From: Paragordius varius
Lineage: Eukaryota; Animalia; Nematomorpha
Assembly (NCBI GenBank): GCA_964247055.1
Contig: OZ176059.1
Location: forward strand, 496,001-560,000
Length of the DNA: 64,000 bases
Direction of reading: 5' to 3'
The position numbers and the translations under genes were made by a program. Positions within the stretch are counted from its first letter, which is position 1. Each line of letters opens with the position of its first letter. This document shows, in pieces, positions 29,501 to 32,500 of the stretch. The notes below the pieces were generated by a model that did no database searches, had not been told where the DNA came from, and worked only from the letters and a program-made list of their open reading frames with translations.

Positions 29501-32500
29501 AAAATTTAAAGGAAAAAAAATGGCGACGAAAAAGTTTTTGGATGTGGATTTTTTACAAATATTTTTTTAATGTTAAATTTTTTTGTATAATGCTCCTAAA
29601 AGACTAAAGAAAGCATATTTTCGAATTTGGCTTAATTTCTTAAACCACTTTTTTAAAATCTACAGAATTCAAGTTGCTCCGGCCGGCTACATAAAACTAC
29701 CCCAAAACGTCATGAGTGTTTTAAACAGTGTATTGTATTGTGTAACAATACAATATTTATCGTTCAAAAAAATTTTTTTGTTGTATATAGCAAATACATG
29801 CGATTATTCCCAAACCAATCACACTAATAATGATAATCCTAATATGGGCTGTAATCGACTTATTCTGACCGGGACACCTATGCAAAATGATTTGAGGGAA
29901 CTGTGGTCCCTTTTTGATTTTTGTGCCCCGGGTAGGTTGGGCACTTTGAAAGCTTTTATGGATAATATAGCGGCACCCATAGTACAATCCGCTACACATC
30001 ATAGTTTTAGCGGAAATACGGTAAATTTTTGTAGTTTTTTTCGAGTTTCATAAGTTTATAAAACAACGTATGTACAATATAGAGTTCACATAAGAGCTTG
30101 TATATATATATATATATATATATATATTATATATATATATATATATATATATAATGTGCATTTTAGTTGTCTTTTTTTTAATCTTCACCACTGATTTGTG
30201 ATATGGATAGGCTGTTTTTTTCTTCAATTTTTTTGAGTAAGACCCTTTTATACTGACTGTCTGAATTCGGATTTGACTACAAATGACTTAATAGGCCTTA
30301 TTTTTAGATGCAAATATATCAATAATCAATATTCTGTTTAAGAAAATCAATTGTATGCGGATTACGTAAAATTTTGATTTTGAAATTAAGATTTCTTACC
30401 TGGCTGCATATATTATGGAGAACCGTTGCTCATTCCATACTAAATACTTTTTTAAAAGAAATTTGTGTAAAACACACAGTACTAATTATGCGTTTTATAT
30501 GCGTTGTTATTATGTTTAGTTTTATAATAAAACAGCGGGTTAAATTTCCCTGTTTTTAATTATAGCTATATTTATACGGTATATTTTTCGCTTTTTGGGA
30601 TTTTTAAAGGCGGTTTTTACTCTCTTAGTTATAATTGTTTAAAGTTATGTATTTGATTTGTATATACTTTTTTGCTTTAATTATACTTTTTATAATGTAT
30701 TTTTTCACCATTTTTTAAATAAGGTCGTTCTCTCTTTAAAATATAATTATATCCTATTAGCTATTCTAACCCTAAGATTTATGCTAGAGGGAGAAAAAGA
30801 GCGGTGATGGGGGGGGGGGGGGTAGGGGGTAGGTTAAATTCTGCCTTTTTAATGAAATTTTTTTGTATATACCATTTACAATTCAAATTCACCCTTAAAA
30901 ATGAATTATGCGTTTTTAACCGGCTAATATAACTCACATCATTAATATGAATCTTTATGACATTGTAGTTTTTATTGTTTTTAGTATTATTTTGATTTTG
31001 AGCTAAATTTCATTTTTGAAAAAATATAAAAAAATATGGGTTATTTTCAATATTCTAAAAACATTGCATTGTTTAAGGGTGAATTTTAGCTGTAAATATT
31101 ATACAACAGATACACTTGTATGTTGGTGATAATAATAATAATACACACTATAGATTTATGGGCCTGCTGAATAAAAACAAGCACCTACTGGGTAGTAGGT
31201 GCTTGATAGTATGTACCAGTTTTCGAAAAAAATTGAATATAAATAGGTACTTACTATCATGTACGTACTTAAGTCTTTAGTATGTGTAAAATGTTTATTT
31301 TCATTTTGTTTTTTTTGAATTCCATTCATTAAATGCGTTTGAAAAATTTATATTGAAAATAGAAAGTCTAACTTTTGGAAAATAAATATCGATTATCAAC
31401 TCATTTTTTTAAATAATGCTATTATTAATACACACATTTATTCAATATACAAAATATACATCGAAAAAATGTTTAAACGATTGAATCTCGTTTCATTTTG
31501 CCAGCCTTGAGTATTTGGGTTAGATCAATATTTGCTTCACAATCCTCCATATATTTAATATCAAAATATGAATTACTATCAAAATCTGTTAAAGGTTCGT
31601 TAATATATTTGGATACATTATGTAATATGGAACATGTTAATATAAGTTTTGGTATTCGTTTTAGGCTTATACGAATTTTGTTACCGAGTATAGGAAATCG
31701 GGTCTTTATCTGACCGAAAACCCGCGCTCGATAATGCTTCTTTCAGAACTTGGAGCCAGGGTGATAGTGGATATCCATAATCACCTAACAAACAGAAATC
31801 ATTTGTTTGCACATATATTTCTAATTATATAAGCCCCATCCTGGCTAATGGATAAAAATGAGATATGATAATTGGCTTAATCCAAGCACAATCGGTTGCC
31901 CTCTCTGGGCCTAAGATCTCCGTTTTCTCTTTCACCAACTATAATTGGTTGAAAATCTTAAGATACTCAGTATATATACAAACTTTTAACAGTGGTTACC
32001 CGTGCTCATTATGTGTGGCTGATGAGTCCACAATAAGGACGAAACGCGTCTCACACTATGACACGTGGTAAACACTGTCCCCTTTAAATTTTTGTTTCAT
32101 AAAGCCACCTATTGCTTGATAGGAAGCACTATAACTTCTAATTGCAAAGGTAGGCTAAGAGAAATAATCTCCATAATATGTTAAATATTTACTAGAAATC
32201 ATTTTGTTTGCACATATATGACTGAACAATCGTGTTTCGCCATATCCTTGAATCATGTACAGATCCTGGCCATTGTGCATCCACGGATGTAATTTCTTCA
32301 TTGGCATTACATGTGATGAATTGTACATTGAGGGTACATCGATCGACCCTTTCGATTTATATAGGCCTCAACATTTTCTTTAGGTCTTAATATTTCAAAG
32401 TGTGAATGAACAATCAATGCAACCAATAGCAGTTGGCATTATAAATTTGGATAGCCATAGTTTATTCGCCATATTAAGCTTCTCAAATGACTTGGGAAAT

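Follow-up and report, generated by a model that had tools for sequence, protein, structure and literature searches.

A retrozyme-like hammerhead element in one arm of a Paragordius varius Harbinger derivative, the matching empty site in the mirror arm, and a probable mobilisation by Penelope-like elements

The non-LTR retrozymes of metazoans are small, ORF-less repeats that carry type I hammerheads; their target duplications exceed 4 bp (Cervera and de la Pena 2020, PMC7229834), and they have been argued to be non-autonomous derivatives of Penelope-like elements, or PLEs (Li, Clavereau and Pollet 2026 preprint, 10.64898/2026.07.22.740005). PLE insertions themselves are 5'-truncated, with a tail of 30-40 bp at one end, an inverted copy, and partial tandems of the pLTR (Craig et al. 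2021, PMC8557442); their target duplications vary in length, those of PLEs in Adineta vaga measuring 0-10 bp (Arkhipova et al. 2013, PMC3846280). In vitro, both strands were cut and extended by a PLE protein, which began reverse transcription at two internal sites on the RNA; the distance between these sites matches the genomic tail, and insertion does not require hammerhead cleavage (Frangieh et al. 2024, PMC11167929). The LTR retrozymes of plants have type III hammerheads within LTRs of about 350 bp, a PBS and a PPT, together with 4-bp duplications and mobilisation of the Gypsy type (Cervera et al. 2016, PMC4918200).

The locus considered here lies in a window of 64,000 nucleotides (the whole stretch of DNA analysed: positions 496,001 to 560,000 of contig OZ176059.1, assembly GCA_964247055.1) from the nematomorph Paragordius varius. 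The window is AT-rich, at about 26% GC, and the element of interest is a 375-bp insert in one arm of a palindromic transposon derivative. This element belongs to a kind that has already been described, and is not a new kind of element. Like the metazoan non-LTR retrozymes, its family is an AT-rich, ORF-less repeat of about 0.4 kb with a type I hammerhead (matching Rfam HH9 below the gathering score), without LTR, PBS or PPT, with duplications longer than 4 bp and a proposed dependence on PLEs. Unlike the long tandem arrays of those retrozymes, the 30 loci mapped here are dispersed single, partial-tandem and head-to-head copies; where a copy ends is determined by the boundaries of a tail rather than by the ribozyme cut. 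With PLEs and their pLTRs, it shares an optional tail at one end, inverted 5'-truncated copies in head-to-head arrangement, partial tandems, and variable duplications, and with PLEs also a minimal hammerhead with a palindromic helix III. Unlike PLEs, it has no RT/GIY-YIG ORF and no detectable similarity to the PLE loci sampled from this genome, and the 25-26 bp duplication of the window copy exceeds the 0-10 bp of the Adineta vaga elements. The plant LTR retrozymes are likewise non-autonomous retroelements with a hammerhead, but the present family differs from them in its type I hammerhead, its duplications of 10-26 bp, and its lack of an LTR-internal-LTR structure, PBS or PPT.

A sequence-only reading of the window had proposed that the 375-bp insert is bracketed by a 25-26 bp duplication, and direct reading of 31794-32219 confirms this. 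The insert occupies 31819-32193 (+ strand), and on either side of it stands a copy of AGAAATCATTT(T)GTTTGCACATATAT, one of 25 nt and the other of 26 nt. The first copy (31794-31818, +; AGAAATCATTTGTTTGCACATATAT) and the second (32194-32219, +; AGAAATCATTTTGTTTGCACATATAT) were delimited by direct reading and by alignment of the two arms, and they differ by a single T within a T-run, copy 1 being the shorter. The inserted element is a complete, tail-less monomer spanning family positions 1-375, and, mapped onto the ruler sequence described below, it has a 3' end of the class without a tail (site B). We class it as ORF-less; its sole open reading frame is 68 aa long.

The host of the insertion is a Harbinger/PIF transposon derivative, as its DDE_Tnp_4 transposase sequence and terminal inverted repeats demonstrate. 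The left arm (31160-32532, -) received the insertion and comprises the C-terminal half of the transposase and a terminus; the right arm (33589-34503, +) has no insertion and comprises the Pfam DDE_Tnp_4 match and a terminus. The arms are inverted repeats with 92-98% complementarity, their termini, GGGCCTGCTGAA (31160-31171) and TTCAGCAGGCCC (34492-34503), are 12 bp long and perfect, and both arms encode decayed pieces of a DDE_Tnp_4 (Harbinger/PIF) transposase, with PF13359 scoring 28.4 bits on 33819-33998 against a cut-off of 24.8. The derivative as a whole (31160-34503) has the form of two arms of about 1.3 kb around a unique centre of about 1.06 kb (32533-33588), each arm combining the C-terminal half of the transposase with the same 12-bp terminus; it is an element with two 3' ends. 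The left arm also has an extra palindrome of 29 nt at about 31179-31207. At least 20 other Harbinger copies in the genome have some 55 extra bp at a point equivalent to about 33955, where their matches are split (1-106 and 106-321); these 55 bp are missing from both arms in the window, at about 33955 and at the mirror position. Their absence could reflect the loss of a short intron, or a deletion common to both arms that preceded the arm duplication.

The mirror arm has a single, unbroken occurrence of the target sequence at 33884-33907 (-), followed by AGAAT (33908-33912); the empty site as a whole (33884-33912, -) has the ancestral form AGAATAAATCATTTTGTTTGCACATATAT. Alignment of the arms with one another leaves a single large difference, made up of the 375-bp block and one of the two copies of the duplicated sequence. 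The earlier description of this empty site as lying in the mirror arm of the same Harbinger is correct, given the perfect termini and the transposase pieces. Further empty sites were recovered by searching the 110.6-Mb assembly of 44 contigs. The 24-mer AAATCATTTTGTTTGCACATATAT, at up to 3 mismatches, has 36 matches in the genome and its reversed control has 1, so chance is not an issue. The 25 matches with at most 2 mismatches fall within Harbinger matches, with the single exception of C5:1563271, and those with 3 mismatches lie mostly outside Harbinger matches. At least 20 other Harbinger copies span the site contiguously (query 106-321 within 213-240 bp), and none of these contiguously matching copies has the 375-bp insert there. 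Among the other copies of the element that were examined, none has the flanking 25-mer at either end, and the possibility that the 25-mer is part of the element was rejected on that basis. The sequence-only reading would have been refuted by a flank shared among copies of the element, or by the insert's presence in other Harbinger copies; neither was found in the copies compared, and the repeat is therefore a true target-site duplication, its source being ancestral Harbinger sequence.

The same comparison dates the insertion relative to the inverted duplication. Both duplicated copies in the left arm read AGAAATC (AGAAATCATTT(T)G) and have a 3-nt deletion in common. The mirror arm and four other Harbinger copies are without this deletion and read AGAATAAATC, or CAGAATAAATCATTTTG in longer context, and it is this genome-wide pattern search that polarises the 3-nt difference. 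Since both duplicated copies have the derived AGAAATC and the right arm has the ancestral AGAATAAATC, the insertion postdates the duplication of the arms, as the sequence-only reading had suspected. The most economical history is that the left arm lost 3 nt after separating from the right arm, that insertion of the element then duplicated a target that was already altered, and that a single T was lost from copy 1 afterwards. The opposite order, in which the insert is older than the inverted duplication or ancestral to the Harbinger lineage and was lost from the right arm by recombination between the 25-bp repeats, has the attraction that deletion between direct repeats leaves precisely one repeat, the very state of the right arm. 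The insert is, however, missing from the site in the at least 20 other Harbinger copies, and the collapse of two derived copies cannot restore an ancestral form. Loss from the right arm is thus contradicted by the sequences themselves, and we regard it as scarcely credible.

The family to which the insert belongs has at least 69 BLAST matches in the genome, at up to 95% identity and with unrelated flanks. The suggestion that the ribozyme unit is mobile is upheld by these dispersed matches, and by the finding that the flanking 25-mer is the Harbinger's and not the element's. A second, older copy ('HHR2') is present in the window itself at 46846-47194 (+), with 74% identity over approximately positions 1-261 by local BLAST; it has an internal deletion and keeps a 3' tail at 47153-47194. 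The proposal that 375 bp defines the length of the unit did not survive the comparison. Most other copies have a conserved tail of 36 nt, ATAAAGATGGCGTTTTCCGCTAAAAAATTTGTGATT, after position 375 (...TAAATATTTACT), and in partial tandems this tail passes directly into position 1 (TTCTAATT...). With the tail joining position 375 back to position 1, the family repeats every 411 nt or so: 375 plus an optional 36. The core of the tail, GATGGCGTTTTCCGC, has 52 sites in the genome and is conserved across subfamilies, including ones missed by the 375-bp query, and this core could fold into a small stem-loop (UGGCG/UUUUC/CGCUA). It starts with an ATG-led mini-frame, MAFSAKKFVIF*, reminiscent of the pLTRs of PLEs, which take in the start of the ORF.

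Thirty loci were mapped to a ruler composed of the 375 bp of the window copy and the tail of L008, which is not a consensus. Their boundaries fall into two classes of 3' end: one without the tail, at about 364-380, and one with it, at about 417-425, or at about 390-396 in an older subfamily. Two-armed insertions are head-to-head and have the tail on exactly one outer end in 16 of 17 independent cases (L002, L003, L005, L006, L009, L012, L013, L014, L015, L016/L030, L018, L020, L021, L024, L027 and L029), the exception being the old copy L023. Partial tandems, each with a single hammerhead, occur in L002, L003, L005, L006, L008 and L009, and no full multi-unit tandem array was found among the 30 loci. 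The 5' start lies within 5 nt of position 1 in L001, L012, L015, L018 and L028. Target duplications of 10-16 bp flank eight other copies (L003, L006, L012, L013, L014, L020, L024 and L029), all of which exceed a null drawn from mismatched flank pairs (95th percentile, 9). The long duplication that the sequence-only reading had emphasised is therefore real at the window site, where its 25-26 bp are the longest seen in the family, but atypical of the family at large. The window copy has neither tail nor inverted arm.

The hammerhead motif lies in a long hairpin at 31985-32082 (+), with its core at 32000-32072. In a search of 601 nt, Rfam HH9 matches 32000-32072 (+) at 32.6 bits (E 2.5e-6); because this is below the gathering score of 52, a search of the whole window at the gathering threshold returns no match, and the motif is visible in a permissive search only. 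With an intact core (CUGAUGA...GAAAC...GUC), the motif has a helix II of 4 bp and a long, extended helix I; the 98-nt hairpin has a predicted folding energy of -38.6 kcal/mol (z = -5.3), and the motif is kept in 30 copies. Helix III has just 2 bp, within the palindrome ACGCGU, so any ribozyme activity is predicted to depend, probably, on a dimer. PLEs reportedly contain minimal hammerheads with a palindromic helix III, as Cervera and de la Pena are said to have found in 2014. Hammerheads of PLEs and amphibians that function as dimers have been described with such a short palindromic helix III (PMC7229834). When two of the hammerhead hairpins are co-folded, the minimum-energy structure is a plain full duplex. 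Cleavage is predicted 3' of C32050 (GUC 32048-32050), or family position 232, which is away from both ends of the window copy and from where ends cluster in the family; only two (227 and 234) of some 25 truncation points fall near it, which is about the level expected by chance. Where the DNA copy ends is not decided by the ribozyme cut site. Elsewhere in the window, at about 60560-60620 (+), there is another hammerhead-like motif ('HHR3'), with CUGACGAG...CGAAAC as its core and a sequence unrelated to the 375-bp family.

The genome also holds a potential source of the enzymatic machinery. An intact PLE ORF of 787 aa with a YVDD motif is present at L038:5346-7709 (-). The ORF as a whole gave no Pfam match, and a scan of its sub-regions recovered RVT_1 (39.4 bits) and, at the C-terminal end, a GIY-YIG domain (23.4 bits); a PDB sequence search with the ORF returned no match, and its neighbours in the ESM Atlas carry RVT_1, GIY-YIG and HTH_animal. 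It has several near-identical copies (95-99%), and at least four diverged PLE families are present, with PLEs arranged in at least nine head-to-head pairs. PLE activity in the genome may be recent. A direct partner for the element did not emerge from the loci compared: no match to 16 PLE loci was obtained by BLAST, whether with the unit by itself or with the tail appended, and none of the 52 genomic matches to the tail adjoins a PLE ORF match. The autonomous partner may, on these comparisons, have diverged or been lost. Three PLE loci, when scanned with Rfam, yielded no hammerhead at E<=0.01. Another minimal hammerhead (CUGAUGAUGCC...GGGCGAAA) was located by regular expression in two other PLE-bearing loci, L045 and L049, which surround PLE ORF matches; there the motif CCUGAUGAUGCCAUUGGGCGAAAAUUUGAGUC lies at about 1460 (-) in L045 and at about 4872 (+) and 1528 (-) in L049. 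Distinct from that of the 375-bp family, it looks like the PLEs' own hammerhead.

It is very likely, in our assessment, that the element is an ORF-less, retrozyme-like derivative of PLEs that carries a hammerhead motif of type I and that PLE-driven target-primed reverse transcription copied from RNA into the Harbinger arm. Because the window copy has no tail and no inverted arm, its attribution to PLEs rests on its relatives, and in the family the one-sided tail of 36 nt, the inverted 5'-truncated copies, the partial tandems and the variable duplications are all present. The earlier suggestion of mobilisation in trans by a retroelement enzyme is supported by an element that is ORF-less and by relatives that carry a Penelope-like insertion signature. 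Both the agent and the order of nicking and priming are matters that we infer, as is any role for the ribozyme. A PLE RT/GIY-YIG protein, supplied in trans, would nick the two strands 25-26 nt apart. The 3'-OH of the bottom strand would then prime cDNA at an internal site immediately upstream of the 36-nt tail (at about 375, site B), synthesis would proceed to family position 1, and repair of the staggered nicks would duplicate 25-26 nt of the target.

Other routes to the same product are also conceivable. The element could be mobilised by a different retroelement enzyme, as a LINE-dependent SINE or as the solo LTR of an LTR-type retrozyme. LINE insertions, too, have variable and sometimes long duplications, 5' truncation, and inversions through twin priming, and no matching autonomous PLE was found among the 16 loci. 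But the element's 3' ends have no poly(A) or simple repeat, the head-to-head pairs have the 3' end on both arms, unlike the products of L1 twin priming, and the one-sided 36-nt tail is of a kind described as specific to PLEs. An LTR origin is further opposed by duplications that are not 4 bp long, by the type I hammerhead, and by the lack of any internal region between LTRs. Mobilisation by such an enzyme is, on balance, improbable. It is harder still to credit that no element enzyme was involved and that a cDNA or extrachromosomal copy was captured at the DNA level during repair of a staggered break, the duplication having arisen by chance. The exact monomer ends of the window copy, its lack of tail and inverted arm, and its atypically long duplication would all suit such a capture. 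Yet the 3' end falls within the cluster at 364-380 formed by some 20 other arm ends without the tail, and therefore looks like a regular initiation site, and L012, L015, L018 and L028 likewise start within 5 nt of position 1. We consider this reading very improbable.

Within the PLE-driven scheme, it is also conceivable, though unlikely, that the tail-less 1-375 copies are single-turn cDNAs of a circular RNA that had been processed by the ribozyme and ligated. Reverse transcription would then start at the upstream edge of the tail, make one turn, and stop at the site where the enzyme binds the tail. Several 5' ends within 5 nt of position 1 are consistent with this, but starts at position 1 are explained equally well by transcription beginning at position 1 or by endonuclease resolution at the tail. 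If true, such a route would physically link circular retrozyme RNA to the two-start-site mechanism of PLEs.

In effect, the locus offers a natural experiment with its own control: the sequence with the element and the sequence without it lie 1.7 kb apart, and dozens of further empty sites are spread across the genome. The pairing of filled and empty sites gives the exact boundaries of the insertion and its 25-26 bp duplication, with no need for population data. It places in an invertebrate a hammerhead-bearing, retrozyme-like family with the one-sided tail that biochemistry attributes to two internal start sites of the PLE reverse transcriptase. The dependence of animal retrozymes on PLEs had been argued earlier mainly from co-occurrence and from similarity to pLTRs in vertebrates; the one-sided tail provides structural support for that dependence.
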